From Haliotis rubra (taxonomy: Eukaryota), in NCBI RefSeq assembly GCF_003918875.1, contig NW_025766747.1, positions 248,001 to 312,000 on the forward strand: DNA of 64,000 nt, given 5' to 3'. Shown here piece by piece: positions 913 through 62,105 of the stretch (within the stretch, counting starts at the first letter, position 1; the number at the start of each line of letters is the position of its first letter). The position numbers and the translations under genes are program-made. The notes under the pieces are model-generated. The model saw only the letters and a program-made list of their open reading frames with translations. It did no database searches and had not been told where the DNA came from.

Positions 913-1991
913 TCACTGCAACAGTGATGAATCCACACTAAGCGACGTATGACCTCGAAGACCTCGAACCCAACTCTGACTGATATCCCTTGTAGAACCC
1001 GTCATTGACTGTTGTATGTGTGGATACAGGTAGGTGCAGGAACGGTCAGGTACATTTGAAGTGGGTGTGGGAGCTTGTGGTACGTATGTTCGACTCAGGG
1101 ACGATCTTGCCGGGGAGAGCTGGAGAGAGGGGAGCCGGTGAGAGAGCTGTTGATGCTGCTGGGGTTGTAGTAGCCGGCTGATGGAGAGTAGACTGTAGGA
1201 GATCCCATTGTCCAAGGACTGGAATCAGGCTTGCTCGATGTGCTGTAGGTCAGTCCGTGGGGTAAGGAGCCGAGACTGAGGGGGTTGAAACCTGTGGAAG
1301 GAGATGGACCCCCATACAATCCGAATAACTGTCCATAAGAACTGGCAGGATGGAATGGAGGATCATCACGACGTTGCTTTTGTGCCGACTTGAAACGTTT
1401 GGAACGACGAAGGAAACTGCCGTTACCGAACATGTCCCCGCACGATGGATGCAGAGCCCACAGGTTACCCTTGCCTGGTTTCCCTGGAGGTCGGGGCACC
1501 TTGACGAAACAGTCATTGAGGGAGAGGTTGTGTCTGATTGAGTTCTGCCATCTCCGTTGGTTGTCTTGGTAGTAGGGAAATCTCTTGATGATGTAGTTGT
1601 AGATGTCGTTGAGAGTCATCATGCCTGTAGTGGAACTCTCGACGGCCATGGTGATGAGAGCCACGTATGAATAGGGAGGCTTCTTGTTGGAAAATTGTCT
1701 GTCTTGTTGTGAGAGCGTCGATATTCCTGAGAAACTATCCAGATTGATGTCTCCGTCTCCGTTTGAAGATACCGATGACGAAGGAGAAGGGAGAATATTG
1801 TCATAATTTGGAGATGGTAGTTGAGTTTGGACAGACCCATGACTGATCTCTGATGTGACGTCTTCTCCTTCAGAAGTTTGAGGCATGACTGTAACGGAAT
1901 GTTCAGAAGGTGTTGGGTGACCAGATGTCGTCTGCTGTCCAATACAAGGAGCCGTACTTGGCACATACTGAAACATGGATGGATTATACAT
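913..1991 (-). CDS. foxAB: Forkhead box transcription factor, FoxAB-like, copy 1 (intronless; one apparent -1 frameshift at 1112-1115)
   Basis: Forkhead domain [18 protein letters not shown]...[20 protein letters not shown]...[24 protein letters not shown] in ORF 1095..2066. Likely start is ATG 1991 (MYNPSMFQY, homologous to [10 protein letters not shown] of copy 2), since ATG 2060 is only about 14 nt from the TATA box. As assembled it stops at 1095; adding one base to G4 at 1112-1115 joins ORF 913..1215 ([15 protein letters not shown], homologous to copy 3 [15 protein letters not shown]). Class call rests on recalled FoxAB-type MMTLN and [12 protein letters not shown] motifs (FoxB has MFENG). 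Confidence 0.85.
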
Positions 1992-2073
1992 GATTCCTGA
2001 CTCAAGGTGCAGCAGGTGAAAAGGTATTATCTCAGTAGGCAGTTGAATGTTCCTCCCCATCTCCACGGCGAGG

Positions 2074-2100
2074 TTTATATGCCCCGTTCAGATAATCCCC
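2074..2100 (-). promoter_or_regulatory. Core promoter of Fox copy 1: TATAAA plus TAATCC site
   Basis: tttata at 2074-2079 (TATAAA on minus strand), TAATCC at 2093-2098, and a CCAAT box (gattgg) at about 2221. Confidence 0.65.
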
Positions 2101-4647
2101 TCGACACGCGCTTTACAGATCTCATTTGTTTCTAGAGTAGGCGACCATTGATACGTAAATTAGATTGATCTCAAACCTAGTAATTGGGATCTCAAATACA
2201 TGGTACCTGTTATCTGCTCCGATTGGTTATGCACCAGATTTGAACTCCGCCTCTGCTTAAGTAGTTTTACAGTCAATGTACAGCTTTGAGTGTGTTGATA
2301 AGTTGACATAGAGAAAAACATTATGTAGCAATTGATAGGTTAATTAGATTTGTGGATGTAATGGGTGTGTCCTCAATCACGTGACACTGTCAATTACTTC
2401 TGGCCAGGACAATAGCCCTGCCTCCAGGCAGCAATACCTTGTTGCTTCTTTACGACCTTCATGTTACATGTAAAAGACACATTCACAAATTTATATCTAG
2501 AACAGAAATATTATGTCAATTGCTCTGCTTAAGTAAAATGATGCAAATTTGAAGGACTTGATCCTTTCCAGAAATCATAAGGGGAATTTTGCGATGGTAC
2601 GTCATAACCTGCCCAATGAACATGAAATTGGTATGTATGTCCAATATAACTGATCACGGTATCATGGAGACGTGTTACTTAGCTACGTTTATGTCATACA
2701 GCTAATGTCACCACAGTTCAGTCCCATTCTGTCTAGAAACATAAATATTGGTCATCACAAAAAATAACATCCAGTTTTGTGACAGAAGCTACAATGATGG
2801 TCGTTGTTCTAAGTATTGGTGCAGAGAGCAGTGCTTCAAGTTAAGGATTTCGACGAAGTTGTGGAAAAGGCTCTTTGTTGACTTGTTTGTTAATTATATT
2901 AGGGTGAAGAAATATGTTGGTTCAGTGCAATCAGATTTGAGTACCCTGCCTTTCGTGGCTGATGGGATACATTAATTCTGAAAAACAATTTAGTTGTTTG
3001 TAAGAGCTATGAATATATATACTGGTACCTGTATACACAGGCAAGTGGCAAGTGTAGAATATTGGCAGCTAGCCGCTTTTGCTGATATTACGTAGACAAT
3101 GTCACAGCAATTATCTCCACCCCACAGTTGCAGTGCTAAGTATTTTATAGATATATTTTCTAACCTTTTTTTAAAATTGTGCACATTTATCTCTGCTCAT
3201 AACTATCGACACGCCTTCCAGGTATATGCGTCTCAGTGTAAGGTTGACTGTGTTTATGAGCATGGGTGTATACCTATCAATCGTGTCTCATAAGATCCAT
3301 TGGTAGGACATTGCAATCCACTGTTTTATTAATCCTGATTCGTATTACTGTATTTCACATTTATTTTTACAGAACCTGAACTTCCGATCTGGAAATACAC
3401 AATGGCTAAATGTACTTCCACAACACAAGCGACACAAGATGACGACAGGAACACTGGCTCACAGACGAGTCAAACAGTGACAATGATAGTTTCTGTAATA
3501 ATGAAACGCTAATTGCAGCTAATAAAATGTCACTACGTGTTGCTTGAATGATGAGCATCACACCTTGTATCGAAATCCTTACCCAGGGGCGTCAGGTGAA
3601 ATACCGTGTCTCCCCCGGGCCTATCTCCCTGACTTTTCCTGAGTAATTTCCAGGGTCAATATTGAACCACGTGTACTAACTTCGTGACATGCTTTTCAGC
3701 ATGGTATAAATCCGATTTGTAGCAACCAGGTTACGTAATACGTAAATCCAATATCTACGGCCACGCCCATCAAAGATATACACTTGCTGTGCATGACATG
3801 CAGGTATATGAGATTCCTATTTGTCCAGTGTACCATGTAGATTGTTCCCATGTGTATCATTATAACCAGTTAAAACTAATTTACGCAGTGTTACTAATAT
3901 GAATATAAATTATGAGTTACTATTACATGGCAATGCAGATCCGACTGTTCGCATAAATTAAAACATGTTTAAAATTGTTCAAATCAATCAAAAGAATATT
4001 TTAATTATTGTCATTATTCCACTGTTTCCCCATCATTCTGTCTATCTTGCTTAAAGAAAGTAAATAATATTTATGAACTCACTACGAAGAGGGTGTTCTA
4101 AGTTGTATAACCTGTACCCAATTCTTTTCTCGTGATTAATATATGTTTAAACAAACTAGTTTATCCATCTATGTTTCGTTCAGTAATGTTCTGCTTTCAT
4201 GTGAATACGAAGTCCTCACAACATAACCAAAATATACAAGTTAATATCAACAAGGTGGAATTTGCCAGGTAGCAACTGACATTCACAGGCTATGTCGAAT
4301 TACAGCATTTACTCAACAGTACTGATCACCATACATACTGTTTCACAGCATACCACTGGGTCTATTGATCCCACCTTAACAAGCACTGTTGATATCACCA
4401 AGTGGATGTGTAAATCTGAGTCATAATCTCTTTTGACCACATGTTGGTGTTTTAGCATCACAAAGACGCTGCTCGTGGTCCATGGTCCTCAACATTACAT
4501 AACTCTAACAAACCAGTTTAAACCAGATTAAATACGGGATAGCTGATGTATCCAAATTCTTTCGAATGTTTAATGAAACCTTTACTGAGGTATTTTTCGA
4601 GATCCTCTCACAGATTTGTAACACGTGTTGCATGTCCTAATCGGTAG

Positions 4648-6550: not shown

Positions 6551-7129
6551 ACAGACGTCTTTATCCAAGTTCACAGAAGACCGGCGAATTAGTAAAAGTG
6601 GAACGTTCCTATTGTAATTGATGATTGACAAAAAAATCATTCTAGGTTGCCACAGATTAATTACGTGTTACAGGTCCAAGGAATATTCCAAACTTTTTTG
6701 ATATAACCAATAACATTAGCAGTATGACCAGCAGTATGTTTTATGACGTGTTTTATCAAGGAAGGCTTTTCTCCATACAACAGCGTGATACGCGTACGTA
6801 TCAAGACAAAAAAGTAATATTTTTCTGCCTGTACGCTGATGTAGACAGCAATGTAGAAACGGAAGAGGAACACATTTTCTGCAAAGACAACTTCTCTTTG
6901 GCAATAGATGCAACCTTTCGGCCAGTTGCGTAATAACACATTAGCATCTACACCGAAACGTCGCATCTGTTTCAATAAAGATGTTAACTATCGATTAAAA
7001 TACCAGCTTCTAAAGCCAGTTAAATGTAAAAGCTGTTTGAACATGTCACTTTTAAACCTAAATAGAAAGCCTTGCAGCAAATGTTTTGTCCACTTACATC
7101 ATCAATGTGTATATCATATTTAAGGTTAG

Positions 7130-7225
7130 ACTTTGGTTTTTAACGCAGCTCTCAGGAATATTCCAGCGATGTTGAAGCAGTCTGTAAATATTCGAGTCTG
7201 GACCGGACAATCCAGTTATGAACAA
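7130..7225 (-). mobile_element. SINE family B 3' fragment
   Basis: aatattccagc...gtctgtaaata-tcgagtctggacc-gacaatccagt is the reverse complement of the family B 3' half. Confidence 0.6.
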
Positions 7226-8371
7226 CTTGAAACTGTAAGTATTTTGTGTGCTCGGGAGTTGCATCATAAGAAATATGTCCGTCCTCTCCTTTAGTCCGTT
7301 TTGGTGGGAGTTTGTCACAAATACTTACATTATCTAACGGCACTGTGTTTTCACGTTGACGAAAGGCCAAAGTGACGCAGGTACAGTTAAGACATACCAT
7401 ACATTAGCCATACCATACAGTTTATACATTATCATAAATTATTACAAGTGCATCCAGTGCTGAAGGTGTAGCCTTATACATGTACATACCATATACAATA
7501 TAGATCACCAAATGTGAATCTATTCACGATAGTAGGTATGTGATCGAAGAGTTGTAACTTACTCCTTGGTTTGATATAAAGGTGTTCCATTTGTCAACAG
7601 TCCACTTATTATATTTCCATGGTTACAGAACCAATCAGTATCACGCCCTCTCGTGTTCAGGGTCGACCACACCACAAACAACACCACTCTGGTGGATGCT
7701 ATTTGTATAGGCATCTAATTAGCCAAATATGTTTGAAATTATATGTAGTAACCTGATAGCATACACACAATGCCATGTAATGTTAGACGCGAGCAGGGGC
7801 GTCTTCCCAGATCACGTGTTTATGCCGAACGCTGTGATATCGATGTTTGTGTCCACATAATGCGATTCAATTAAGCTGGACTTTGATAACCGTGTCCACA
7901 ATTCAGTCCAACTTTTTAATGAAGATGAATGTTGTGTTGTGTATGTTCTGTTTGATGTAATGTATTTGCAGAGACAAACCTACTTAGCCGATTTTGTCAA
8001 GGCCGACAGGTTCAGTGAAAGTTGACTACGACCATTGACTTCATGTACATGTTCAAAATACTAAACAGGTTAAACTGACCTTTCACTTCAAAGTCAAGTT
8101 GGTTAATACCCATACATGTTCATCGTGTTCAGCACGATGGTTTCAACTTTCTAAACCACAACCATACACGTACAAATTGATATATTTATGTACTCTTGCA
8201 TTGATACATCTCTTTAGTGGTGAAGTTCAATCAATCTTTATTCAGTACTTAAAACGGCTACATGCCTGTAGTACATTTAAAGTTTACACGAGTATAGTCT
8301 GTTTGCAGTGAAAACGTACCGATGAATTTCACTCTAAACAAAAAAGGTAAATCGAATAAAGTGAAATTAAG

Positions 8372-8745: not shown

Positions 8746-8747
8746 AC

Positions 8748-11550: not shown

Positions 11551-13955
11551 AAGACATATGTAGAAAACATACTATATATACCAGATTTACAGGAAGCCAG
11601 AGATGTACATGTATATACAATCAATCACAGAGGACATATAAAAAGGAAGTTATAAAAACAATGATAATAGGGATAAGGTAAAAACAGTTGACACAAACAA
11701 TGGGGGTAAGGAGATGTGAACACAGCAGAGTGAAAATCATTTAATTATAATTTATAGGAAGTGTTAATATATTTTGACAAAAACAACATTTGTATTACGG
11801 CTATTTAGGTTGATATTTGTATACATTAGTTGTCTATGGGGCTTATGGGTATTTGAATGAAACAGTAAACATGCATTGTCCATCTGTTCAAAGTGTGGAT
11901 CCACTGGAAATTTAATTCTACCTATATACATTACGTTTCTGGATATTAGAACTCGATCGTGATAGTTCTCAACTAGTTTGGTCAACCAAGATAGCCAGTA
12001 CACGTACGTTACAACATTTTGCACGAGGTCCACGGTTCTTTAAAACAAAGTGTGTCGGACAACAATGACATCTCAATCCTATGAAAAAAGGACGTTGTTT
12101 TTAACACGGTCACTAAAATACGACAGGTGTATTCTGCCTTCGTTAATACAACTAAACACACCAACAGTAACTATTGACAAATCAACTGTGCAAAATAACA
12201 GTGATTAATCAATCAACGTATTATCAGTTAATCATTTCATCGAAGTTTTATGAAGCAAATGATAATTCCTCTCGCTCCCTGCGCTTCCACAAGGATCTTA
12301 CATAACATGTAATACTTCTGCCACATCAGACCTGAAGGCTGAATGTATACGAGATATGCCAAATGGGAACTTTTCTCAGGTAAACTGAGTGGTGTTAGAT
12401 AAGTAACCTTTACCGGTTATAAATTGATTAACTGAGCATCACTTGAATGGTGGCAAATAGATATACCACAAGTGTATACCACCAAACATGATGGGTGACA
12501 ACAATGAGGTGCTATTCGTTCTATTGCATGCTATTTAGTTGCCTATAAAACGGAATGGTCGTTGCTGTCTTGATGATACAAACTTATTGTTGCTTTTATA
12601 AAGCATAAATAATGCTGTACATTTTCTGTACACAAAGTTGATAATTGTACATATATGTTAACGTGAGTGGATTTATAAATTATAGTTGCCCCTACAGATT
12701 TTTGCTTCCGTGCGTCCCTGTAAGAAATTTCGATCGATTGAAGCGTTTAAAATTGTGTCCAGTGCCAAACTTGCAAACCTCTACTGTACACCTTTTGAGG
12801 ACTGGACTAAGTTTAACAGCTGGCAGGTTTTCTTTCAAGCGTATTGCTGTGTTCCAAACATTTTCAACCTCGTTACTATACTGATATCAAGCTATGCAGC
12901 GACATGTCGATGAATATGTATTTTCTTGTGTCCTTTCGTCGAGCGTGTCATGTGCGGGGTTTCGCACTTTGCACAACTACTCAATAATACATTGCAGAGT
13001 TGCCTCCCTTACATAGGACAGCATGTTGCCGGAAGAGGGTCAGCTGGATCGTTGTGATGTTATGTTTCATGGGTTTCACTGACAGATGACACATGTATGC
13101 GAAAACAAGAGGCATTTCTTCACCTATTGTAAACAGAACATGCTCAGGTAAAGTGTCCGTGTTACGTGCCTACCGCATGTGCCCGAATCCCTCTTCACAA
13201 TTAAACTATCGAGGGTAGTGTTGCAGTCACCGAGTTGTACTCAGTAGGTGTTTGGTTGTAAATCAGAAAATACAAACATGGTCAGCTATCGATGGTCATC
13301 AGTAGAGGGGACACTGCGGTCATATATGAGACGGAAACTGGGTGTGAACTCAAGGGTAGGACTAGAGCAGGGTTTTACTTCGACTCACAAAAATATTTGT
13401 TAGTATCAATGTGAAGTAATGGTGTACAGTAGAGAACTGAAGAATATAATATCAAAGTTGTTTAAAAATATGGCATGAGTTTAATCATTTTAAATACATT
13501 GGGGCATTTTGACTACCTCCCTGTGGCAATTTGACCAAATTTGCTGGGGCATTTTGTAGCTGGCAATTCGACTGGTACCCCCAGTAAAGCTGATGAGGGG
13601 TCACTCTTGACCCGAGTGACATCGAATTATACCTTGAGTACAATCAGATACATCAAATTGTACTCTGAGTTTTATGTCTAGGCTTGTCTTTTTGTAACCA
13701 GCTTCTCTCTTCTAGTTGACTGAGCAGAGACAATGGAATCTGAGATAACAGGGTTACTTGATGCTAGTTTCATGACGATTCCTTGTTACATGGACAATAT
13801 GGACAAAACATGTATTGTCATGAACTAGCGCTGTAGCAGTGAGCAAGCCCTTGGTATAGAGTATAGCTGGTCATAAGAAGATATAAACTTCAAACATAAT
13901 CTGATATAGTTAATGGTATCCCAGGTACCTGTTGCTGGTAACCAGGTTGATGAGA

Positions 13956-14201: not shown

Positions 14202-14210
14202 CCAGGTTGA

Positions 14211-30720: not shown

Positions 30721-31767
30721 TTAGGGGTAGTTTTCCGTGTTCCTGGTGGAGGGTATAGAACTGAAAGACTGTCGTGTATATGGGGACACATGATAATGAA
30801 GGTTTTCATCAGCACAGGACCCTTGGGAGCTCACTTGAGGCATATAGGTTCCATTCTGGGGAGAGCTGGAGAGAGGGGAGCCGGTCAGGGAGCTGTTGAT
30901 GCTGCTGGCGTTGTAGTAGCCGGCTGGTGGAGAGTAGACTGTAGGAGATCCCATTGTCCAAGGACTGGAATCAGGCTTGCTCGATATGCTGTAGGGGTGT
31001 CTCTGGGTCAGTCCCTGGGGTAAAGAGCCGAGACTGAGGGGGTTGAAACCTGTGTAAGGAGATGGGCCCCCATACCATCCGAATAACTGTCCATAAGAAC
31101 TAGCAGGATGGAATGGAAGATCATCTCGACGTTGCTTTTGTGCCGACTTGAAACGTTTGGAACGACGAAGGAAACTACCGTTACCGAACATGTCCCCACA
31201 AGATGGATGCAGAGCCCACAGGTTACCCTTGCCTGGTTTCCCTGGAGGTCGGGGCACCTTGACGAAACAGTCATTGAGGGAGAGGTTGTGTCTGATGGAG
31301 TTCTGCCATCTCCGTTGGTTGTCTTGGTAGTAGGGAAATCTCTTGATGATGTAGTTGTAGATGTCGTTGAGAGTCATCATGCCTGTAGTGGAACTCTCGA
31401 CGGCCATGGTGATGAGAGCCACGTATGAATAGGGAGGCTTCTTGTTGGAAAATTGTCTGCTTTGCTGGGACAGAGTTGACGTTCCTGAGACAGTGCCTAG
31501 ACTTGTGTCTTCTTCCCCATCGTTGTCGGAGCTCAAGGAGGAAGATGGTGATGGCAAGGTGATGTGGTCGTTGTCTGGAGAATGTTGCTGTTGAAGGGGG
31601 TCCCTCATGTCTATAGGAGAGAGTTCAGACCTGACGTCGGGTTCACGTACACCAAACTTGGACGAAGTAGGGTGATGTTGTGTTGCATATAGCGGTGCCA
31701 TCGTCATAGCCGTTGATGGGTCAGCAACAGCACCTCCATACTGAAACGTTGTTGGATTAAACAGCAT
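30721..31767 (-). CDS. foxAB: FoxAB-like forkhead transcription factor, copy 2 (348 aa, intronless)
   Basis: Intact ORF with forkhead domain; TATA at 31842-31849 and TAATCC at 31859-31864 upstream; AATAAA signals near 30515-30530. Confidence 0.9.
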
Positions 31768-33189
31768 TTTGTATTCTCAGAGAATCCTGTATACTGTACT
31801 CGAGCAGCAGTGAGACTATACCTACATACTGGGCCGGGGTGTATATATATCCGTGTAATAATCCCCAAAGAAAACAACTAGTTGCAAACATTTCTCCAAG
31901 TACAAAAAGGGTAGTTATTGTTAATGTACACTGATTGGACTAAATCCACAATGCCCCGCGAGAGGTGTGGCTAGTTTGTCAGTATTGTATTTTCCGAAGT
32001 GCTATTGGCTACTGCATCACAGTTACCCCGCCTACTTGTCCGCAGCTCCTCAAGTAACCACGCCTCTATTTTCGCCTTGGTCACCAGTGTGTTGTTTTAA
32101 CCATGTTGGCCTTGCAGTTGTTTCTCACGAACGTGTTCAGTCATTTTGTAAAATGAATGATGTTGTTTTGCTTAGGCGATGAACTGAAAAATCTGTAAAT
32201 TTAGTTTACCAAGATAACGAATTTCAAACAAGTTTATTAAGAATTCCATTTCCCATAAGATTATATAAACATCAAAACAAGAAGTTTATACCTTTTGGAT
32301 TCTGACCAAGTATGATAAATCTTTGTAATATTTTCTGCATAATGTTTAATCGGTCTGTTAAAAAAATGCACAGATTTATGGTTTAAACATATTTGTATTT
32401 CGCCAAAGCCGAAACCTGTATAAGAGAACAAGCCTGGTGGCTTATATAAACGCCGCTCCAGTATATTTTTCCAATGACTGGATACATAAATGAAATAATT
32501 TGGCAACAAAAGAATAATAGAGAGACAAAATAACAGATATATGATTGAGTAATGAATATGTTCGTTATGGTGTTGGTTATGCCTAGCAACGAAATGAGCT
32601 GCTGCAGAAAATCAAGTTATATAAAATTTGTCTTACACTGAATATATATTTTGAGGTGATAATCACTGGAAGCGGTTACTTTTAGAAATGAACTGGTGTA
32701 ATGAGTTGATAATTTTACTATTAGTTGAGTTATTCAATGCGCCGTTACCGTATAAAGTAGTTTTAACATCGTATCCTTGAATATGAAAATACACAGATTT
32801 ATCAGCCAGTTAAATAAGGTCTGAAATGTTTTGGCATTTTATTTATTTGATATTATCGTATCAATTTACGATATAGATGCTTATACAGATATGGGGTAGT
32901 GGGGTGTACACATCGACACAAGCGAGCCACGGTAAATATGAGTTATTTGTGACCTACTGTGTACATGTTGTATATGAACATATAGTACTGGTGAGATATA
33001 ATGACGGTATGTAAGTTGTTTATGCTTGTTCTCATGTTGTCAGTGTTAATAATCGCGGGAAGCGCCACGTGCTGCCAGCATGCTGACGGAAAGAATCATC
33101 CCAAACCGAACATTTTCCAAATAGGAAACAGTCGAAGTTAACAGAGAAACTTGTTTACACAGAAGCTGCACATCTGATCGGGAGGTATC

Positions 33190-38427: not shown

Positions 38428-39504
38428 TTACATAAAGTTAGTGTATTGGTTTCCCAAAGGTTGAATGGACTTTGTAGCACTGGGGAGTGATTGCTGTACT
38501 CGCTGGTACAGAGAGTCATAAGGATTTCTAGATCTCTCAAAGCTGGACGATGAAACTTGAGGCATATAGGTCCCACTCAGGGACGAGCTTCCCGGCGGAG
38601 AGCTGGAGAGAGGGGAGCCGGTTAGAGAGCTGTTGATGCTGCTGGGGTTGTAGTAGCCGGCTGGTGAAGAGTAGACTGTAGGAGATCCCATGGTCCAAGT
38701 ACTGGAATCAGGCTTGCTCGATGTGCTGTAGGGGTGTGTCTGGGTCAGCCCCTGGGGTAAGGAGCCGAGACTGAGGGGGTTGAAACCTGTGTAAGGTGAT
38801 GGACCCCCATACAATCCGAATAACTGTCCATAAGAACTGGCAGGATGGAATGGAAGATCATCACGACGTTGCTTTTGTGCCGACTTGAAACGTTTGGAAC
38901 GACGAAGGAAACTACCGTTACCGAACATGTCCCCACAAGATGGATGCAGAGCCCACAGGTTACCCTTGCCTGGTTTCCCTGGAGGTCGGGGCACCTTGAC
39001 GAAACAATCATTGAGGGAGAGGTTGTGTCTGATGGAGTTCTGCCATCTCCGTTGGTTGTCTTGGTAGTAGGGAAATCTCTTGATGATGTAGTTGTAGATG
39101 TCGTTGAGAGTCATCATGCCTGTAGTGGAACTCTCGACGGCCATGGTGATGAGAGCCACGTATGAATAGGGAGGCTTCTTGTTGGAAAATTGTCTGCTTT
39201 GCTGGGACAGAGTTGACGTTCCTGAGACAGTGCCTAGACTTGTGTCTTCTTCCCCATCGTTGTCGGAGCTCAAGGAGGAAGATGGTGATGGCAAGGTGAT
39301 GTGGTCGTTGTCTGGAGAATGTTGCTGTTGAAGGGGGTCCCTCATGTCTATAGGAGAGAGTTCAGACCTGACGTCGGGTTCACGTACACCAAACTTGGAC
39401 GAAGTAGGGTGATGTTGTGTTGCATATAGCGGTGCCATCGTCATAGCCGTTGATGGGTCAGCAACAGCACCTTCATACTGAAGCGTTGTTGGATTAAACA
39501 GCAT
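38428..39504 (-). CDS. foxAB: FoxAB-like forkhead transcription factor, copy 3 (358 aa, intronless)
   Basis: Intact ORF; N-terminus and 5' UTR nearly identical to copy 2 but C-terminus distinct; TATA at 39579-39584, TAATCC at 39594-39599. Confidence 0.9.
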
Positions 39505-40931
39505 TTTGTATTCTCAGAGAATCCTGTATACTGTACTCGAGCAGCAGTGAGACTATACCTTCATACTGGTCCGGGGAGTATATATCCCTGTAATAATCCT
39601 CCACAAAAACATCTTACAATTCCAATTTGTTCCCAGAGAGCAACTCTATTGTTAGGTAATTGTACCCCCGGGAATTACCGGAGGTCCGGCCAGTGTAAAT
39701 GTAGCATAGATGCTATTGGCTACTTGTAAACAGAGGTCCCGCCTACGTGTTTAGACACCAATCACATTGGTAGTGTAAGCTCTCGCCTGACGCTGGATGC
39801 AATGAGAAATGCCTACCTGATTGTGAAATATTTTAGCTAAATATTTCTTATTTCTTCATAAGCCGAATAAACTATCATTTGTGCTCAGTGTCTTTCTCTA
39901 CAATAGAATTTTGAGCACAATGCAACACTTCTAATTACAAACGTACACATTTAGAGAAAGGCTTATTAGTCCGTTATTCATTGATGTAGTGAAACCCGTA
40001 TCCATAGGGTTCCGGTAGCCTGAGGGTTATCTTGTACATGTCAACTTCTAAAGCTTAAGTCAACATTGATGTCATAACCCTGTAAAACAGACGACATTTT
40101 AACAAATCTATCTAAATCATAAAGTTTTATCCGAGGGTAAAAACGGAAATGATCGCCTTCAAAATATTAAAATATGTCCACATGTATATTTAGATCCACA
40201 TCAATCTTCTCAGTGTATCATATTTGCAGTCGTTCTGTATATTGAAATGTTAATGTCATGAATGCTAAAAAAGGACATATCACAGTCCACTATGAGTGAA
40301 GGGCTGAGTAGGCCACACTTGTTGTCAAAGGTTGTGCATATACTGAGTGACGACTACATGCTTGTACATACTGAACCTAGCGATACCTGGCGACACATTC
40401 AGGGTGACAGACTGTTAGTAACGTGTTGTACTGGCGTTGTAAGGGAAAGGTCACATGCTGAAATAACCATCACATGTCGAAAACACCATGGGTCCTGGAA
40501 ATAGTAATCGAAGACATACAGCTTCTTTAAAAAAGTTTCAACACTTACTGACTTGAGAACAGAGCAGTATCAATTATGACTGAAATAACATCCAATCTGC
40601 TCCAGCAGCCGAGTGGCATCAGCATCCTGTAAACATACTTACATACAATATACATACACCGGAGAAATGGGCAGGATTGTAATGAATAACTAAACAGGCA
40701 CGTATTCGTGCTAACTGATATAGGTGTTGCTCAATTTTTCATTTGTTACAACATATTTTGTGTTTGTAGTAGTTAACCGAATATTGACAATTATTTCTTT
40801 TGAATTGAATTCTCTTGAATCTGTTTGTGTACCTGTATTGATTATATGCACGAAGAGTATGTTTTTAGACTGAACAGTGACAATATGGTGAAATGCTCAG
40901 ACAATACTGATATGACATGTTCATTAAGGAT

Positions 40932-43316: not shown

Positions 43317-43716
43317 TCAACTCTCGACGACCATGGCGATGAGAGCCACATAGGAATAGTGAAAACTGTTTGTTTTGTTTGGAGATAGTTGACGTTCCTG
43401 AGACACCATCAGGAGGACTAAAACCTTCCTCATCGTCGTTGTCGGAGCTCAGCGAAGATGAAGGAAAAGAGAATGCCTCAATCAGGTTGCTTGAAGGTTC
43501 CTGTTCAAACTTACATACGTTGTTATTATTGCTGCTGAATGCAACCCCGAATTATCTTCTGCTACAAATGACGTCTGCCACTAGCCGTGTATTGTACAGA
43601 GTCAGGGATCAGAAGGTGCATGTACAGTGTACGGTAGTGGCAGGTGTTTTGTCGTGACCAGTGTATACAGTCTATCAGTGTTGTTAAGTGGAAACATATA
43701 TGTAAAATAACAACAT
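43317..43716 (-). pseudogene. Deleted FoxAB-like pseudogene (seventh copy)
   Basis: Minus strand translates [34 protein letters not shown], then a frameshifting deletion of NKKPP, then YSYVALIAMVVES-stop; the rest of the forkhead is absent. Promoter relic gagattatcc at 43794-43803. Confidence 0.8.
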
Positions 43717-45978: not shown

Positions 45979-47067
45979 TCACTTCGACATCCCGAAAAAA
46001 GACATATTCAGAGCAGCTCCTGTGAACGTTGGATAGAACTGAGGAGAGGAATAATTATACAAATTCTGAATAGCACTGGAGTTCGGTGATTCTGGGATGT
46101 ATGTCCCTGGCAGAGGCGGGTTTCTCGACTGGACAGAGGGCATCTGTGGCATATAGGCCGTTTGATGTCCTGGGGGAGTGCTGGAGAGAGGGGAGCCGGT
46201 CAGGGAGCTGTTGATGCTGCTGGCGTTGTAGTAGCCGGATGATGGAGAGTAGAGTGAAGGAGATCCCATAGTCCAGGTACTGGGGTCAGTCCTGCTTGTG
46301 CTGGGGTGTGTCTGGGCCAGTCCCTGGGGTAAGGGGGAAAGAGATAGGGGGTTGAAGCCTGGGTAGGGGGACTGACCCCGGTAAAGACCAAGCTTTCCAT
46401 ATGCTGTGAACCGCTCAATCAGCGCGTCGTCTTGTCGTTGTTTGTGTCCTGACTTGAAACGTTTAGCACGACGAAGGAAACTACCGTTACCGAACATGTC
46501 CCCACAAGATGGATGCAGAGCCCACAGGTTACCCTTGCCTGGTTTGCCTGGAGGTCGGGGCACCTTGACGAAACAATCATTGAGGGACAGGTTGTGTCTG
46601 ATGGAGTTCTGCCATCTCCGTTGGTTGTCTTGGTAGTAGGGAAATCTCTTGATGATGTAGTTGTAGATGTCGTTGAGAGTCATCATGCCTGTAGTGGAAC
46701 TCTCGACGGCCATGGTGATGAGAGCCACGTATGAATAGGGAGGCTTCTTGTTGGAAAATTGTCTGTCTTGTTGGGTTTGAGTTGACGTTCCTGGGACATC
46801 ATCAATGTGTACATCGTCATTGCCGTCCTTGTCTGTGCATGGTGACGGTGACGGCAGAAGGTCTCCGCCAGGGGAGTCTGTCTCTTCTCGGTATGTGGCT
46901 CTAAGAAACATGTCTATTCCCTTTGGCGTTCCAAGAGGCGCAGTGGACTCCGGTGTTGCCGGCGCAATCGTAAATGTTTGAGGCCCCATGTACGGAGGTG
47001 TCTCGAGCTGCATCACGGCCTCGCCAGTCACGCTGCCGTACGGAGATAACAGTGTATGATTCAACAT
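45979..47067 (-). CDS. foxAB: FoxAB-like forkhead transcription factor, copy 4 (about 362 aa, intronless)
   Basis: Intact ORF from ATG 47067; only copy with RRAKRFK; TATAAA at 47129-47134 and gagattatcc at 47144-47153. Confidence 0.9.
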
Positions 47068-47894
47068 GGTCACGGTGATGTAGCAGTGAAGGTACAGTGT
47101 TGTATACCGTCGTCACCCCGTCCATGGGTTTATATTCCCCGCCGAGATTATCCCCTCAATGCAGTTTGTTTTGTCTCTTGATTAGTCAGCCATTGTTGGG
47201 TAATTTGGAATGGGTCGTGTATTATACAACAGGCACGTCTTTAATTGGTCGTTCATTCCTAGTGGCCGGCTCATCTGCAGCTACGCCCACCATTGTCCAT
47301 TCTATTAGGCCGCCCCAGTTTTAGATAGGTCAGGGAATTTGGGTCGTTTTATTCAGTTTTATTATTGTATTTCTTCATGCATATCCCAAAGCCGATTTTA
47401 GTCTGTAAAGTGAAAAAGAAAATGCAATCAGAAACGTAGATAATGCTATACTGTCTCACAAACATATTAGTCTTGAAGGTCACACATACATGCTGATAGA
47501 TATAGTGTACAACGGTAGCAGTCCTATAATGTTGGTGATGTATTAAAGTACACGCGAAGCTGGTGCACTAAATAGCTTATTTGGCATGAACCACTTAAAG
47601 ATGAAAAATAATGATAGAATACTTTGCATGTTCGCGATCGTATATACAAAATGCATCCAAGGTATCAATTGAAGCAGTAGTACACCTAGGGTATCCAAGC
47701 GTTGTATCCGCCGTGTTGGTAAGGGAAATCTTTGCTCTTGTCACACAGTCTTGCGGAGATGTTTTTGTCACTCTCACACATACTCTTTGAGAAAAGATTT
47801 GAGCACGATTCTTATTTTGTAAACAATCTAAAAAGCGAAAATACATCAACGTACACTTGTGTTTGTAGGGGTAGGTTTGAAGCTGAAGTGCAAA

Positions 47895-51074: not shown

Positions 51075-52282
51075 ATTCCTACATCGGGCAGCCAGATTCT
51101 TCTTAGCCGTCGCTAGAAAAACTCCAAATTTAGCAGTTCGTGGCGAAATGGGCTGGGTTTCTCAGTATACCAAACAAAAAATTGAGGTTCTTCGTCTTTG
51201 GCGTAAACTTCAGTTACTTGAATTTAGCAGAATACCCAGCGTTATTAGCAGATGGTCATTTAATTGGAGGAGATCTTGGTATAGTGGAGCTCATAAATTA
51301 TTTATTAGTTTTCATTTACCTATAAATGATCTGTTTAGTATTTCACATGAGGAGTTTGTTGCGGCTAAAGAACACCTTAAGGCACTAGACAGTTTTGATT
51401 GGTTTTCTGGGCTCTGGAATGATAAAGGGCAGGACAACGGAAATAAATTACGTACTTATCGTCTTTTAAAAGATTTTTTACAAGTTGAACATTATGTTGA
51501 AACAATTCTACCTAGGTCACATCGTAGTATCTTGAGCAAATTCCGTTGTGGCACTTTGCCATTAGAGGTAAAATTGGGTAGATATTCTCGTCCGAAGTCT
51601 CCCCTTCATGAAAGGGTGTGTACTCGCTGTAGTAGCAATGCCGTTGAAGATGAATTACATTTTCTGGTTAACTGTGATTATTATTCAGATCTCAGATATA
51701 ATCTTTGGAAGGAAATAACCAGTGTCCATCCTACATTCTCCTCTATGTCAGCAGTAGATAAAATGGTATTCTTACTTACAAATAACCAGTTCGTAAAACA
51801 CCTTGCCGCACTCGTCCATACTATGTTTAGGCGCCGGAATATTTCTGTAGAATAGGTAACTCTACAATGTACTTATAATAATAACGTCAACGTGTTTGTT
51901 ATTTATGTAATTTATGCATTTTAGGTAAGAAAGTGTAAGTGTGTGTGCGTGCGTGCGCGTGTATGTGGGCCTGTCTGTCGTAGGTGTCTGTCTGTAGGCT
52001 CGTGCGCTCGTGTGTGTGTGTGTATGTGTATGTGTGCGTGCGTGTGGGTGTGTGAAGGTGTATGCGTTTTGTGTTTGTGCATACAGTTCGGCCTGCGTGT
52101 GTGTATGTGTGGGTGTGATTTTATTACTAATGTTTTATACAACTGTGATATTTGTGTCTCATAGGCCTTATGGCTGGATGCTGCTTTTAAACTCTCGCAA
52201 TAATGTACCGTCCTTTCTAATGTTCTGCAGCATGTGACACATTAATAAACTATATTTCTTCTCTTCTTCTTCTTCTTCTTCT
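51075..52282 (+). mobile_element. 5'-truncated non-LTR retrotransposon (open ORF2 C-terminus, TG-rich 3' UTR, (TTC)n tail)
   Basis: HRAARFFL..TPNLAVRGEMGW, GNKLRTYRLLK, FRCGTLPLEVKLGRY, RVCTRC..VEDELHFLVNC zinc knuckle; aataaa followed by ttc repeats. Confidence 0.88.
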
Positions 52283-53050: not shown

Positions 53051-53446
53051 AGACTTGTTAATCTGATGTAAATACAGTAATATAACGATACACAACATTA
53101 CTTTGTCACTCACTGAAATGAAATTGTAATTAAAACAGTACCGAATAGGCATAAGAGACACATCGCAAAACACATTAGTGAATATAAATAAAGAAACAAA
53201 GATACTAAGCTGTAATAGTACAATACTACACACTGTATATTGGTACCGTTAGTTCATGCAGCATGTTTCCACATAGAACAATATTACACCTTGTGGAACA
53301 TGTGAAATGTTGTCATACATAACAAAATACCTACGTTGTGTAAATGGTAGGTACAATACCTCGGTAAGTTGGAAAATGTTAATTCACCTCACATAAGCAA
53401 AGCGTAATTGTCCTTACATGGTTTTCTCAAACAATACGCCACACTA

Positions 53447-54021
53447 TAGTCCGTTTGACTTCATTTGACACCGATGAATTGCTCACTAACACAAAATCTT
53501 ATACATGCAACAAAATCAAACTTTGCACAGTCACATGAAATCGACAGACCAACTCTGATGATTTGTCTCATAATGTTGGACACCCGAATAAACAAGTTGT
53601 TTAACAAACGATCATTATTTTGTTGTCACTTTTCGCTGTTTCTTACGAGGGATAACCACTTGCTAGTAGAACAGCCAGGTAACCAACAAGCGTGTGCAGT
53701 GAAATTTCAATTCCACACGTACAACTCGCACACCTGGCTGGTAACCAACAAGCGTGTGCAGTGAAATTTCAATTTCACACGTACAACTCGCACACCTGGC
53801 TGTTCTACCAGCAAGTGGTCTCCCCTCGTAAGAAACAGCGAACAACAAAATAATGATCGTTTGTTAAACAACTTTTTTATTCGGGTGTCCAAAATTATGA
53901 GACAAATAATCAGAGTTGGTCTGTCGATTTCATGTGACTGTGCAAAGTTTGATTTTGTTGCATGTATAAGATTTTGTGTTAGTGAGCAATTCATCGGTCT
54001 CAAATGAAGTCAAACCGACTG
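53447..54021. mobile_element. Foldback MITE (Tc1/pogo-like ends, TA target) with about 230-bp inverted arms
   Basis: ta|tagtccgtttgacttcatttga...tcaaatgaagtcaaaccgactg|ta; internal direct repeat of about 60 bp. Confidence 0.85.
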
Positions 54022-55874
54022 TAATTGAAACAAATCTTATTGTACAAAATCCAATACGCATAAGGTGATGCCCGGTTATTTACGGAATGAAATAATTTAA
54101 CATACTAAATGAGAAAGTAATGCAAAAATATTGCATCTGTCACGTGATAAGCATCATCGTGACAACGCCAACTTAGAGTAGGACATGCTTACTCTTTTCC
54201 CGAACACCGGGTGTCACCACTTATGAGATCCATTCAAGTAATGTTCACAACTACTTTGCCTTTAACGCTCAGAGGCGAGGCTGATTATCATCTGTCGTTG
54301 AATTTGTATATTTACCAGAAACGATGACACTTATTTTGATTTCAATGGACTGAGAATCAAACATAATTATATAACACTGCCGCGGACCTAATCTGTGGCA
54401 TGATTTACAGTGCGTCGAAGTGAACAAATATGTACTTGGTTCTGTACACACTAGCAATCAGATTACACCATCGATTATGTATTGGTGTCTCACTCTTCAC
54501 ATTCATGACATATACCACAGTGGTATGAAACATTTATTTGGTAAAAGGCTCCGTTTGGGGTTTAAGAGCCATTTGTCTATACGTTATTGAATACCATCCT
54601 TTGTTTGACAAATAATGTTTCTGGAGGTTCTCGTGGTTTAGTGACATTTATCTGTTATACAAAAGACACAAAAATAAACAAACAAACAAGGTAGGAGAGA
54701 CTCATTAAATGAGTTGTTGGATTATAGAGACACCATCCGCTCTGTTTTACTTCACTTACTTTATGACGTCCAAACTATTTGACATATATCAATTATGTAC
54801 ACCGTTTAAGGTTGAGAACGTTGTCAGTACTGAATATCAGTTTTCGTTGATCTAAATCATTTATGCATGCTACAAGCCTATGACATAAAACATGTATGTC
54901 ATACCACACTGACAGAAGTATGCCCATGCAAGAAGGTAGCAGGAAACCACATTCTTCTTTGTTTGCTGCTTAACACCTCAGTCAGAAATATTCCACCTAA
55001 ATGACAACATCTGTACATAATCGAGTATGGACCAGGCACTCTAGTGATTGACATAATGATTTTCAACTGGGATCGACAACATGCATCAGCTAAATCAGAG
55101 AGATGATTACAGATTGTATGGAAGTTAACTTTGACTGTCACGTACACAGTCTGTAAATAGCCTCCCCATGACCAATTCCTTGATGAGCGATGACGAGCTG
55201 TACACACGATAACAGCACACATTTTCTTGTGAGAAATGCATTATAGGAAATCGTGCTGACAAAGTCAAAGCATCCACTTTCAAAGAAAATATGTAAAGGA
55301 GCCTAACTCGTGACGTCAATACGACTTACAAAGCACTTTGCAGGTACATACCTTCACAAAAGGTTGAATGACAAATATGTTGACGTAAACAAAACAAGTG
55401 AATAATTACTGTTCAATAAATCATGCTTTGTTCAGTCAAGTAACCAAAGTAAACTCAGGAGGTATGCCTTCAAACACAGTAACATCCGAGCTCGATATAT
55501 TCCTAAAATCTCGTGTGTATTTTGTAAGGAAAAGTATCCTTGAATAAACAAGCAACATATATAACTCTGGAAATATACTGGACAGAAATAGTTAGGGATA
55601 TATGTAAATTTTGAAATTGTGAATAATGATCTATTGATTCATGGACACACTGATAAAATATCAATCATAAAAAATTATCAATATCCCTCATTTATTTTGT
55701 CCAGTATATATGTTTATTAATAAATACCCGTAAATATATATTATATGTGACATTCCATATACTTGCATGATGTCATAGAGAGAAGAATCCAAGTCTTCCG
55801 TGTACAACTGTGTGATCCATATCTAAAAGTCATTGCACATAGCACTATTGAGTCCACTTGAGTCAAGTGTTCGA

Positions 55875-56967
55875 TCACTGATCACAGTCTAATGCTGTAC
55901 TGAGGCTGGGGTAAAGGTGGCCCCTGTACAACCGGGCTGAGAAGTGCTGTTGTAGAGCGAGATACGAAGTGTGGGTCTGGTCCGACAGGGCTGATGGCTT
56001 GTCTGTGCTGTATACCCGTTCGGGCCCTGAATGAGAGCTGGAGAGAGGGGAGCCGGTCAGGAGCTGTTGATGCTGCTGGCGTTGTAGTAGCCGGCTGGTG
56101 GAGAGTAGACTGTAGGAGATCCCATAGTCCAGGTACTAGGGTCGGGGTTGCCTGGTGTGCTGCAGGAGTGTGTCAGTCCTTGGGGTAAAGGGCCAAGATT
56201 AAGGGGGCTGAAACCTGGATAGGAAGATGGAGCCCTGTAAAGCCCAATCTGTCCGTACGGACTGACGTGGTGTAGAGTAGCGTTGTTGCAGTGTTGTTTT
56301 GGGGCCGACTTGAAACGTTTGGAACGACGAAGGAAACTACCGTTACCGAACATGTCTCCACAAGATGGATGCAGAGCCCACAGGTTACCCTTGCCTGGTT
56401 TGCCTGGAGGTCGGGGCACCTTGACGAAACAATCATTGAGGGACAGGTTGTGTCTGATGGAGTTCTGCCATCTCCGTTGGTTGTCTTGGTAGTAGGGAAA
56501 TCTCTTGATGATGTAGTTGTAGATGTCGTTGAGAGTCATCATACCTGTAGTGGAACTCTCGACGGCCATGGTGATGAGAGCCACGTATGAATAGGGAGGC
56601 TTCTTGTTGGAAAATTGTCTGCTTTGCTGGGACAGAGTTGACGTTCCGGGGAAGTTGTCAAGGCTGAGATTGATATCACCGTCGTTGTCAGAAGATAACG
56701 AAGATGATGGTGATGGCAGGAGGCTGTCGTCATCGTGTACTGAAAGGTGATAATGGTCGCTGTGCGAAGTCTCCTTGAGTTTGTTATCCAATCCATTTCC
56801 TGAAAGAGGCGCTTGCTGAGGCCTGCGTTTTACTATCGACGAGTGAGATACAGGTGAAATGGGGGGACGTCGGAGACGACACCTGCTGCACCATAAAGGG
56901 GGGTGGTATCGTCTCCATTACAGTACATCTGGAAGGTGTTTAAACACTGAACAGCTGAACTCGCCAT
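55875..56967 (-). CDS. foxAB: FoxAB-like copy 5; two apparent -1 frameshifts in G runs (young pseudogene or assembly error)
   Basis: ATG 56967 ([15 protein letters not shown]) lies about 60 nt below TATAAA 57027-57032. One extra base in G6 at 56861-56866 joins the forkhead ORF 56057..56791. gg at 56060-61 is ggg in copies 2, 4 and 6; restoring it extends the frame to TGA at 55875-55877. Confidence 0.75.
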
Positions 56968-57882
56968 ATTCACCCAAAGGAACAGGAAGGTACGCTTTAG
57001 TGTCGATACTATCCACAACTCTGGCATTTATAGCAAAACCGATTCATATTCCATAAGCGGACAAACTAGGAAACAATACAAGTAACATGCAGAAGAAGAA
57101 AGTCCAGTATGCGTTAATTAAACGCCTGCTGCCATTGACCGATCTCACTGTGCTTGTCTTTCTATTGTTGTAGGTGCGGGGATGTTCAGCTGCCCCAGAT
57201 CGCCCGAGGTTTAGCTATTATACAAAGCAAACACTTATTATCTGTGTTGACTCAAACATTTCACGCTCGTTAACATCTACTTATGTGTGTAGGTTTAAAC
57301 GATTTGTACAAAGACAACTAGAACCCAAGAAGTACTCTGTATGCCATTACAACTTGATTTAAACAGTATTTAATATGTAATACACAATAATGAATAATAC
57401 ATAAAGGATCAGTAAACAGACTGCATCAAGCCTAATTTTATAAATGCTTCTCCTAGACATAAACTTATAACGAATGAATTTTGTGGAAATACAGAAAATG
57501 AGCAGACAAATGCTTTCATAATTCAATAATTTCAGACTAAATACAGCATATGGAACCACACTTTATGAACAACGGTCGGTATCATTCAAGAAATTGTAAA
57601 CAGACAACTTGATACTCAGCATTACTATAGATCAGTAGCGAGCAGTTTTAATGTGATGATAATAAAATACATTTATAGTTATATTTCATTTTTGAATATT
57701 GGTTTCGTTAAGATTCGCGACTGACAATGGTGCGACATAACAACAGCTTGTCTTAACAACATGGTGACTCAACAACGATGTGAGAAGACATGACCAAAGC
57801 TTGTTGCCTCCCGCCTGTAGACATAAGCTGGCCGAGTCGGCCTCTTTGATGTCGTCATGCAACTAACGAGATTAAATCAGCT

Positions 57883-60583: not shown

Positions 60584-60720
60584 NNNNNNNNNNNNNNNNN
60601 NNNNNNNNNNNNNNNNNNNNNNNNNNNNNNNNNNNNNNNNNNNNNNNNNNNNNNNNNNNNNNNNNNNNNNNNNNNNNNNNNNNNNNNNNNNNNNNNNNNN
60701 NNNNNNNNNNNNNNNNNNNN
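60584..60720. other. Assembly gap (N run)
   Basis: Run of n. Confidence 0.99.
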
Positions 60721-60995
60721 CCCTTAAAGCATCTTCGCTGCAGCGTGATGTACAGTCACTGATACCTTAGTTGTGGTATCAAGAATCACATACAAATATT
60801 TGAAATAATGATATTTTATTATTTTAGCCACACATAAACACATGTACAGGATCACATTCATTCGCTTTTATGAAGATGCTGAATGTGACATGGAAGATGG
60901 ACCAGTGGTGTTAAAGAATAACATCATAGCACTTATGGATGCAAGTGGTACACAAAAACGTCTTAAATGTCAGATGATTAACAAAGTACTGTTCG

Positions 60996-62105
60996 TCAGC
61001 CAGTTTTCGCTTTGGTTACGGAATCGCTGACAGTATCATTTGTCTTGTTTTTTGGAAATGTCAAGGCTTGGTAAAGAGCTGGGTAAGTTGAAGGTGAGAA
61101 GTCAGGGAGAGAACCAGGGTATGGCATCTGTGACATGTAGGTCCAACCCAGGGGCGAACTTCCTGGGGGAGAGCCGGAGAGAGGGGAGCCGGTCAGGGAG
61201 CTGTTGATGCTGCTGGCGTTGTAGTAGCCGGCTGGTGGAGAGTAGACTGTAGGAGATCCCATAGTCCAGGTACTAGGGTCGGGGTTGCCTGGTGTGCTGC
61301 AGGAGTGTGTCAGTCCTTGGGGTAAAGGGCCAAGATTAAGGGGGCTGAAACCTGGATAGGAAGATGGAGCCCTGTAAAGCCCAATCTGTCCGTACGGACT
61401 GACGTGGTGTAGAGTAGCGTTGTTGCAGTGTTGTTTTTGGGCCGACTTGAAACGTTTGGAACGACGGAGGAAACTACCGTTACCGAACATGTCTCCACAA
61501 GATGGATGCAGAGCCCACAGGTTACCCTTGCCTGGTTTGCCTGGAGGTCGGGGCACCTTGACGAAACAATCATTGAGGGACAGGTTGTGTCTGATGGAGT
61601 TCTGCCATCTCCGTTGGTTGTCTTGGTAGTAGGGAAATCTCTTGATGATGTAGTTGTAGATGTCGTTGAGAGTCATCATACCTGTAGTGGAACTCTCGAC
61701 GGCCATGGTGATGAGAGCCACGTATGAATAGGGAGGCTTCTTGTTGGAAAATTGTCGATTTTGTTGTGAGAGAGTTGACGTCCCGGAAGCATCAATGCCG
61801 ACATGGTCGTTATCTGAACATGACGATGGTGATGATGTTTTACTGACGTCGTTGTCTGATGGGGTTGTCATGGCCCCAACATCTGGAGATAGCTGCAGAT
61901 TACCTTGTACGACATCAACGGGGTGAGTTGATTCCTCGGGATTTGGAAAAGACATATGCGGCTCCGGACTTGAGTTTGGAGACAAGAAGGACAACATCTG
62001 CTGCATGGAAGAAAACGACGACATCATGTTGGATAATTTGTCAGTTTCTTGATTGCTGTAGTGGAAGACATCCATACCAGGAACACTTGAGTTGGAGACC
62101 GACAT
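60996..62105 (-). CDS. foxAB: FoxAB-like forkhead transcription factor, copy 6 (369 aa, intronless)
   Basis: Intact ORF; core nearly identical to copy 5 with unique termini; TATA at 62184-62190 and TAATCC at 62200-62205. Confidence 0.9.

Follow-up and report, generated by a model that had tools for sequence, protein, structure and literature searches.

A ten-gene FoxAB array in the abalone Haliotis rubra, with old subfamilies, diverged tails and forkhead domains probably homogenised by gene conversion

The 64,000-nucleotide stretch of Haliotis rubra DNA analysed here (the window) corresponds to bases 248001-312000 of QXJH01000267.1, a contig of 1,350,645 bp in assembly GCA_003918875.1 (contig coordinate = window coordinate + 248,000), and contains the upstream two-thirds of a tandem array of ten forkhead genes of the FoxAB class. 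Six open reading frames (ORFs) on the minus strand (1095-2066, 30721-31767, 38428-39504, 45979-47073, 56057-56791 and 60996-62105) all match the Pfam Forkhead family with E values of about 1e-37, and their forkhead domains are identical except for RRAKRF in place of RRSKRF in one copy, c4. No further complete forkhead domain was detected by a tblastn scan of the window, and no convincing Pfam match was obtained for its other ORFs of at least 110 amino acids (aa). Four more co-oriented forkhead genes (g1 to g4) were found on the same contig, 5-29 kb beyond the low-coordinate edge of the window. The whole array comprises ten genes and one relic, arranged head-to-tail on one strand over about 91 kb; about 1.7 kb between locus L005 and the window was unseen in the array survey, and no forkhead matches were found within 10 kb outside either end of the array. 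A preliminary description of this DNA had reported six minus-strand forkhead genes with domains differing at one S/A site, a seventh broken copy, and an array that might extend beyond the window. The ORF, Pfam and domain comparisons confirm the first point, the broken copy is real and has the same orientation (about 43318-43470), and the four genes below the low-coordinate edge confirm the extension.

The window genes, called c1 to c6 here (g5 to g10 of the array), all lie on the minus strand and belong to several subfamilies, which are described below. The gene c1 (subfamily A; 1095..1991) has the homologous start ATG at 1991 (MYNPSMFQY) and its forkhead domain at 1389-1685; a deletion of 1 nucleotide (nt) in a C run near 1115 shortens its C tail by about 55 residues in comparison with the near-identical g3 and g4. 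Both c2 (subfamily B1; 30721..31767, 348 aa, domain at 31147-31443), a single ORF, and c3 (subfamily B2; 38428..39504, 358 aa, domain at 38884-39180) are intact; the promoter, N tail and forkhead region of c3 are nearly identical to those of c2, and the C tails of the two are unrelated. The relic (43318..43470) consists of about 150 bp that hold a Ser/Asp-rich pre-domain and the first 14 or so forkhead codons, followed by a frameshift and a stop, and it has no promoter motif. Two further genes are intact, c4 (subfamily D; 45979..47067, 362 aa, domain at 46453-46749), the sole RRAKRF copy, and c6 (subfamily C; 60996..62105, 369 aa, domain at 61446-61742). The H. asinina orthologues of c2, c3, c4 and c6 are, like these genes, intact from the conserved start to the stop.

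The remaining gene, c5 (subfamily C2; 56057..56967), has an intact forkhead domain (56309-56605) within a frameshifted gene. Its main ORF, which encodes the domain, has no ATG; the ATG at 56967 is out of frame with this ORF, and the tail stops early. From the promoter to the 3' untranslated region c5 is collinear with an intact single-exon orthologue of 375 aa in H. asinina, relative to which it carries three indels, all frameshifting (+1 nt at 56903, +1 nt at 56866 and -1 nt at about 56060). The cores of c5 and c6 are 98% identical over 618 nt. We considered and rejected the possibility that c5 is a simple partial duplicate of c6, as its orthologue in H. asinina is full-length and c5 has its own promoter and tails; its core appears to have been converted from or with c6. 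A rescue of c5 by a real intron, as in the two-exon database model P0010 (named H. rubra by NCBI), was also rejected: donor and acceptor sites exist, and the proposed intron spans exactly the frameshifted stretch, which is coding in H. asinina, so that it is likelier a work-around of the gene model. The single-base indels of c1 and c5 may be assembly errors, because contigs built from a genomic sequencing run differ from the assembly by many small indels. Over 43200-44299 and 45665-46212 of the window the contigs of this run (X4) differ from the assembly by about 3%, which reflects either high heterozygosity or residual assembly error. The earlier statement that the genes are single-exon holds on the basis of collinearity with full-length orthologues, not of RNA, with the reservation that c5 is frameshifted in this assembly.

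All four genes below the window share the strand of the array. The gene g4 (380 aa) lies about 5 kb from the window edge and belongs to subfamily A, as does g3 (374 aa); g2 (348-366 aa) represents subfamily E, and g1, a 375-aa ORF at the downstream end of the array, is the canonical FoxAB orthologue. The database protein models of g3 and g4 (374 and 380 aa; NCBI, H. rubra) begin at an ATG (MGRNIQ...) that follows the TATA box by only about 14 nt. Across the subfamilies the homologous start is MYNPSMFQY, which lies 23 codons inside these models (window 2060 versus 1991; L005 3101 and 10001); the models are probably too long at the N terminus.

The genes g3, g4 and c1 form tandem units of about 7 kb that have diverged by 3-6%, g4 and c1 being 96.7% identical over 1.8 kb. 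According to blastn, nucleotide likeness between copies of the window is limited to a coding core of 620-700 bp, with unrelated flanks; the exception is the pair c2 and c3, which are 95.6% identical over 1062 bp. Three runs of N interrupt the window (25452-25645, 44906-45106 and 60584-60720), all of them intergenic and clear of every ORF, promoter motif and stretch from a stop codon to the first AATAAA. At the N run 44906-45106, contigs of the genomic run stop on either side. The loci L002 and L003, taken from the same contig, have no N at 44906-45106 and 60584-60720, and the N runs of the window may be masked sequence and not true gaps.

Each of the six window genes has its own TATA box, 65-90 nt upstream of the start codon, and a first AATAAA 176-339 nt past the stop (in c1 at 790..795, 300 nt past the stop), in agreement with the preliminary description. 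Five of the core promoters, all on the minus strand, combine the TATA box with a GGATTA-type motif: c1 (2074..2098; GGATTAT, 12 nt, TATAAA), c2 (31842..31864; GGATTAT and TATATA), c3 (39579..39599; GGATTAT and TATATA), c4 (47129..47153; GGATAAT, 12 nt, TATAAA) and c6 (62183..62205; GGATTAT and TATATAAG). We take GGATTA to resemble an Otx/Pitx-type homeodomain site. The pattern GGATWAT-N8-16-TATAWR occurs at only five loci in the window, each 75-105 nt upstream of c1, c2, c3, c4 or c6 and on the minus strand; chance would yield 0.25 matches, and the seven overlapping matches observed were reached in none of 100 shuffles. The same pair of GGATTA-type motif and TATA box is present upstream of g1 to g4 and, in H. 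asinina, of the canonical gene and the B2 and C genes; the D gene of this species has a GGATGAT variant. In c5 the GGATTA motif is absent and a TATAAAT box (57026..57032, minus strand) lies 65 nt upstream of the ATG; this type of promoter is conserved in the H. asinina orthologue and is specific to the subfamily. The upstream DNA of the copies cannot otherwise be aligned apart from this shared module. The GGATTA-plus-TATA core promoter looks like an ancestral feature that most copies have kept.

FoxAB is a little-studied class of Fox genes that has been lost in vertebrates. Among the best non-abalone matches of the array genes, the proteins P0038 and P0094 are letter-for-letter identical to Owenia fusiformis FoxAB-2 and FoxAB-1 (supplement of PMC9539403). 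We built a maximum likelihood (ML) tree of 73 forkhead domains with IQ-TREE, using FoxC, FoxD and FoxE as outgroups. A FoxAB clade (support 97/90) holds all Haliotis copies (99/100) and stands apart from FoxA plus FoxB (96/82), the next best groups in an exhaustive search; the FoxB clade was labelled from a published alignment (Homo FoxB1, Owenia FoxB) and the FoxA clade from named proteins (hagfish Forkhead box A2, Nematostella FoxA). Approximately unbiased (AU) tests reject a grouping of Haliotis with FoxB (p 0.009) and with FoxA (p 0.012). FoxQ2, compared by alignment and outside the tree, looks very different from these domains in the published alignment. By inspection, a pre-domain motif and the post-domain motifs YG..LYG and NPL.L..LPQGL are common to the Haliotis copies and FoxAB orthologues. 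The gene g1 is typical of the family, with RRFAE.VKPPYSYIALITMAIESS, YGHFSLYGG and a C-terminal QY...LRMASGSP, as bivalve, annelid and brachiopod FoxAB proteins have. Among the Haliotis sequences of the tree, a single clade (98/89) takes in every derived copy, and the canonical genes branch basally. All copies of the array thus appear to belong to FoxAB, and the class proposed in the preliminary description is upheld by the tree with its published FoxAB labels and by the AU tests. A long-branch protein inside the derived clade (P0162) was set aside as uninformative; it comes from an ENA contig with a single forkhead gene. Four database proteins of 994-1758 aa (P0129-P0132) carry 4-8 forkhead domains with about 38-40% identity, and probably represent tandem Fox genes that gene prediction has joined in other animals.

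The age of the array was examined through the region C-terminal to the domain, with a tree of 38 abalone proteins from four species. The canonical group contains all four species. Subfamily D unites c4 with sequences of H. asinina, H. rufescens and H. cracherodii (99/97), subfamily B1 unites c2 with H. asinina (98/95), subfamily B2 unites c3 with H. asinina and H. cracherodii (100/98), and C/C2 holds c5 and c6 alongside sequences of H. asinina and H. cracherodii. The tree also resolves subfamily E (g2) and subfamily A, to which g3, g4 and c1 belong; the latter consists of species-specific clusters with 3-5 near-identical copies per species. On H. asinina CM074528.1 (55.33-55.37 Mb) the order is C, C2, D, B2, B2, B2-truncated, which matches c6, c5, c4 and c3 of H. 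rubra; the canonical gene of H. asinina lies 1.47 Mb away from its derived array. Copy counts in three other abalone species with chromosome-scale assemblies gave 7-12 models each, on one chromosome. Among the database matches listed, derived-type domains (93-100% identical) were found only in Haliotis, and in Gigantopelta aegis FoxAB is a lone gene, without another forkhead gene within 10 kb. The expansion, with at least five subfamilies that have orthologues in other abalone, is thus old and genus-wide, and the orthologues and the shared gene order place it before the split of these lineages. The lineage-specific amplification proposed earlier stands in that derived domains are limited to Haliotis among these matches and Gigantopelta has a lone copy; it is to be corrected in that the expansion is old and genus-wide, and no recent burst.

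Further observations concern the turnover of the copies in H. asinina. Two relics of derived copies lie upstream of its canonical FoxAB gene (CM074528.1; L006 2281-2587 and 6142-6333). The first has a g2-type promoter (GGATTAT and TATAAA) and about 40 N-terminal codons, and the second is a frameshifted forkhead fragment; the canonical gene and g2 were thus neighbours ancestrally, and H. asinina has lost g2. A third B2-type copy (L007 17297-17923) has an ORF of 208 aa that ends within the forkhead domain and is a decaying member. The array evolves by birth and death.

The near-identity of the forkhead domains contrasts with the age of the subfamilies. Between subfamilies of H. rubra, synonymous divergence (dS) is 0.05-0.17 in the forkhead domain versus 0.41-0.80 in the adjacent C-terminal block (C block; Fisher p 3e-7 to 3e-4), and between H. 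rubra and H. asinina orthologues it is 0.14-0.27 versus 0.16-0.35 (Fisher p 0.55-1). When DNA of four subfamilies was compared in these two species, forkhead dS was 0.02-0.08 within species versus 0.12-0.28 between species, and C-block dS was 0.15-0.38 for orthologues versus 0.50-0.98 for paralogues of different subfamilies; the exception is C and C2, whose C blocks are also homogenised within each species. The ML tree of forkhead DNA groups the copies by species and rejects orthologue pairing (p-AU 2e-5 and 1e-4), whereas that of C-block DNA recovers the B2 and D orthologue pairs (100/99-100). The same pattern is seen in the protein. In MA(V)ESS the variable residue is Val in 24 of 24 copies of H. 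rubra, H. rufescens and H. cracherodii and Ile in 10 of 10 copies of H. asinina, and in YI(V)K it is Val in 15 of 15 copies of H. rufescens and H. cracherodii and Ile in 19 of 19 copies of H. rubra and H. asinina. On the C-terminal tree these two residues, which are fixed by species in every derived paralogue, require 6 and 7 changes.

The homogenised tract has sharp edges. In c4 coordinates (46455..46774, minus strand; about 320 bp) the mean nucleotide identity of five subfamilies is 0.91-1.00 versus 0.35-0.65 on both sides; it rises from 0.59 to 0.91-1.00 at one edge and falls to 0.62-0.65 at the other. A second, shorter block with a mean identity of 0.92-0.96 is present at 46263-46184, and c2 and c3 share a larger tract that includes the promoter, the N tail (dS 0) and the forkhead domain. 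The canonical gene lies outside this homogenisation, with a forkhead dS of 0.6-0.8 to the derived copies. We conclude that this is concerted evolution through gene conversion that is for the most part restricted to the domain, and that the copies owe their near-identical forkhead domains to ongoing conversion and not to conservation alone.

Taken together, we consider it likely that the locus is a ten-gene FoxAB array made of old subfamilies, with domain-restricted gene conversion, conserved promoters and diversified tails. The nine derived copies and the relic would descend from a single duplicate of the canonical FoxAB gene. The derived copies would have split into at least five subfamilies before the divergence of H. 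rubra and H. asinina and then undergone birth and death. Conversion between paralogues would repeatedly overwrite the forkhead-coding tract of about 320 bp, so that the derived copies within a species share one DNA-binding domain, and the N and C tails would escape it, diverging between subfamilies and being conserved between species. Most copies would keep the ancestral promoter, in which a TATA box follows a GGATTA-type homeodomain site at a distance of 8-16 nt. The proteins may recognise a common set of forkhead sites, with differences in cofactor or effector activity conferred by the tails, and the copies may be co-regulated through the shared promoter.

Several points weigh against this explanation. 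The frameshifted c5 and the truncated c1 of this assembly suggest that some copies may be decaying. A conserved promoter motif is no proof of activity, and no such motif was found between the ATG of the Gigantopelta orthologue and an assembly gap that begins 190 bp upstream of it. Counts of synonymous sites in the forkhead domain are small, with 3-14 differences per pair. A search of sequencing runs found no RNA run containing c4. Finally, the depth ratio reported below for the forkhead core rests on contig word depth, not on copy number.

The derived copies could be mostly non-functional, with a forkhead domain that looks intact through conversion from a few working copies. This would fit the three frameshifting indels of c5, the truncating deletion of c1, the relic in the window, the g2-type relics upstream of the canonical gene of H. 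asinina and the failure to find transcripts. We regard it as improbable: c2, c3, c4, c6 and their H. asinina orthologues keep full-length ORFs, promoter motifs are conserved amid upstream DNA that cannot be aligned, the single-base indels may be errors of long-read assembly, and the unconverted tails evolve between species with omega (the ratio of nonsynonymous to synonymous substitution) of about 0.3. Between c3 and its H. asinina orthologue omega is 0.27 for the whole gene, with values of 0.29 for the N tail and 0.30 for the C tail; for the canonical pair of the two species it is 0.09. The preliminary description had supposed one DNA-binding domain with differing termini, and the near-identical domains and the tails conserved between species are in accord with this. 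Contigs of 260-390 nt on the forkhead core, with about 95% identity, came from three runs that derive from other organisms and are only guessed to be RNA; these contigs cannot be assigned to a copy.

It is still less probable that each abalone species amplified the gene independently and recently, the domains being alike through the youth of the copies and not through conversion. Subfamily A has the appearance expected of such a process, with its clusters by species and the little-diverged 7-kb units of g3, g4 and c1, and its youngest duplicates may still fit it. For the subfamilies, this explanation is already contradicted. Their C blocks and tails pair H. rubra with orthologues in H. asinina, H. 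rufescens and H. cracherodii (support 98-100), H. asinina has the genes in the same order, C-block dS is higher between subfamilies (0.41-0.95) than between orthologues (0.15-0.38), and a species clade is rejected for the C block (p-AU 2e-7).

Selection on the nucleotide sequence itself, through codon usage or RNA structure, is hardly credible as the cause of the forkhead identity. The GC content of third codon positions in the forkhead domain is 0.62-0.67 in derived copies and 0.57 in the canonical gene, a modest excess that would agree with such selection. However, synonymous sites of the domain evolve between orthologues as fast as those of the C block, so there is no special synonymous constraint in the forkhead domain and the explanation is already contradicted; the species-specific substitutions common to all derived paralogues also speak against it. 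GC-biased conversion was considered as well, and no conclusion was drawn from so slight a rise.

We give equally little credence to membership of another Fox class (FoxB, FoxA, FoxD or FoxE). The automatic RefSeq names point that way, being inconsistent among the matching models of the four abalone species (B1-, B2-, D1-, D2-, E1-, E3-, E4-, A4-B-, lin-31-, unc-130- and fork-head-like), and the closest solved structures are those of FOXA1, FOXA2 and FOXA3. Against this, the tree and AU tests place the copies with published FoxAB, the FoxB and FoxAB clades are represented by two distinct genes in one chiton, and the motifs flanking the domain recur in the FoxAB proteins of annelids, brachiopods, bivalves and ambulacrarians.

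An array made of haplotigs or falsely duplicated segments is extremely improbable: the close likeness of c5 to c6 and of g4 to c1 and the 3% difference between genomic-run contigs and assembly would suit it, but likeness ends at the gene cores, tails and flanks are unrelated, H. asinina has the same gene order, orthologues occur in the three chromosome-scale assemblies, and the forkhead core has about nine times the depth of its flanks. The last figure comes from a 134-nt forkhead-core contig of the genomic run, with a depth of 504 versus 50-58 in the flanking contigs (contig word depth, not copy number), which five assembly copies match exactly and from which four differ by 1 nt. A collapse of the copies as haplotype artefacts, envisaged in the preliminary description as a possible refutation, is correspondingly improbable.

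A further reading, which might be called one reader, many effectors, can be proposed tentatively, and we are more inclined to doubt it than to accept it. Domain-restricted conversion would have kept a derived FoxAB domain identical across at least nine tandem genes for the whole history of the genus, with at least five sets of diversifying, individually conserved tails and the ancestral promoter on most copies. If this is true, a single ancestral expression domain and binding specificity would be turned into several regulatory outputs, in the early embryo or larva.

The functions known for the class come from annelids. In the species studied, which have one or two copies, expression of FoxAB accompanies axis specification, gastrulation and the formation of the foregut (PMC9539403, PMC4407770). 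The two foxAB genes of Owenia are expressed when the organiser is specified and at gastrulation; the single gene of Capitella is expressed in a D-quadrant cell and, later, in ectoderm and foregut (PMC9539403). The abalone copies resemble foxAB-1 and foxAB-2 of Owenia fusiformis and foxAB of Capitella teleta in their ML grouping, the pre-domain motif and the post-domain YG..LYG, NPL.L..LPQGL and GYY (PMC9539403, PMC4407770); their coding sequence is intronless, as in Owenia foxAB-1, and g1 is a conventional orthologue. They differ in copy number, with 7-12 in abalone versus 1-2 in the other animals searched. The nine derived H. rubra domains share about 11 substitutions relative to FoxAB, including Leu for the aromatic residue (Tyr/His) of wing 1 in GKGN(Y/H)W, and unlike other FoxAB the derived copies have new N and C tails and domains homogenised by gene conversion. 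Expansions of foxQ2 are known in Spiralia (PMC9539403) and are alike as lineage-specific expansions of clade I Fox genes in annelids and molluscs, in a different Fox class (PMC9539403). The closest solved structures mentioned above (PDB 7yze, 1vtn, 5x07 and 8vfy; 151-158 bits) belong to a class that is separate in the ML tree, and no FoxAB or FoxB domain was found among the PDB matches.

Concerted evolution of tandem developmental transcription factors is known from engrailed/invected of arthropods and from the Dux, Rhox and Obox homeobox arrays of mammals. In these systems, as in abalone, paralogues within a species are closer than orthologues, at least in the DNA-binding region. The abalone tract differs in being sharply bounded, its 320 bp or so coinciding with the forkhead domain. 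Conversion here involves nine genes and at least five old subfamilies, excludes the adjacent canonical gene and is traceable in two species with an orthologue dS of about 0.15-0.35. We found no published report of a FoxAB expansion in abalone, in a search that left most subscription journals outside and is therefore no proof; what is new here is the account of the forkhead identity of the array as concerted evolution. Ten genes with an identical domain and diverged tails offer a natural experiment on the diversification of transcription factors outside the DNA-binding domain, and provide a clean, datable case of gene conversion restricted to one protein domain. In trees of forkhead domains such arrays will be mistaken for species-specific bursts, and the family is obscured by the automatic RefSeq names. 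As farmed animals that can be spawned in the laboratory, abalone lend themselves to developmental tests.

Other features of the window lie outside or between the array genes. A minisatellite of about 14 units at 18037-18821, outside the Fox array, has long ORFs in all six frames. A high-copy repeat of about 260 bp resembling a short interspersed nuclear element is present at 45389-45652, 27587-27836, 35048-35292 and 63706-63954, with further copies at 13954-14199, 20724-20904, 26251-26385 and 7129-7230; the depths of the genomic-run contigs that cover it add up to millions, and the three other runs contain it in abundance. Two palindromic stretches between array genes, at 44267-44549 (about 283 bp) and 53445-54023 (about 470 bp), have arms that are 83-84% identical and look like foldback elements or miniature inverted-repeat transposable elements. 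The ORF at 24431-25360 (minus strand, 310 aa) adjoins the N run at 25452-25645, and no further ORF of notable size lies in the 29 kb that separate c1 from c2; it gave only weak Pfam matches below threshold (ApoL, E 0.002). Between c4 and c5, an ORF of 298 aa (50959-51852, plus strand) has no Pfam match and resembles, as an impression only, the C-terminal region of ORF2 proteins of retrotransposons that lack long terminal repeats.

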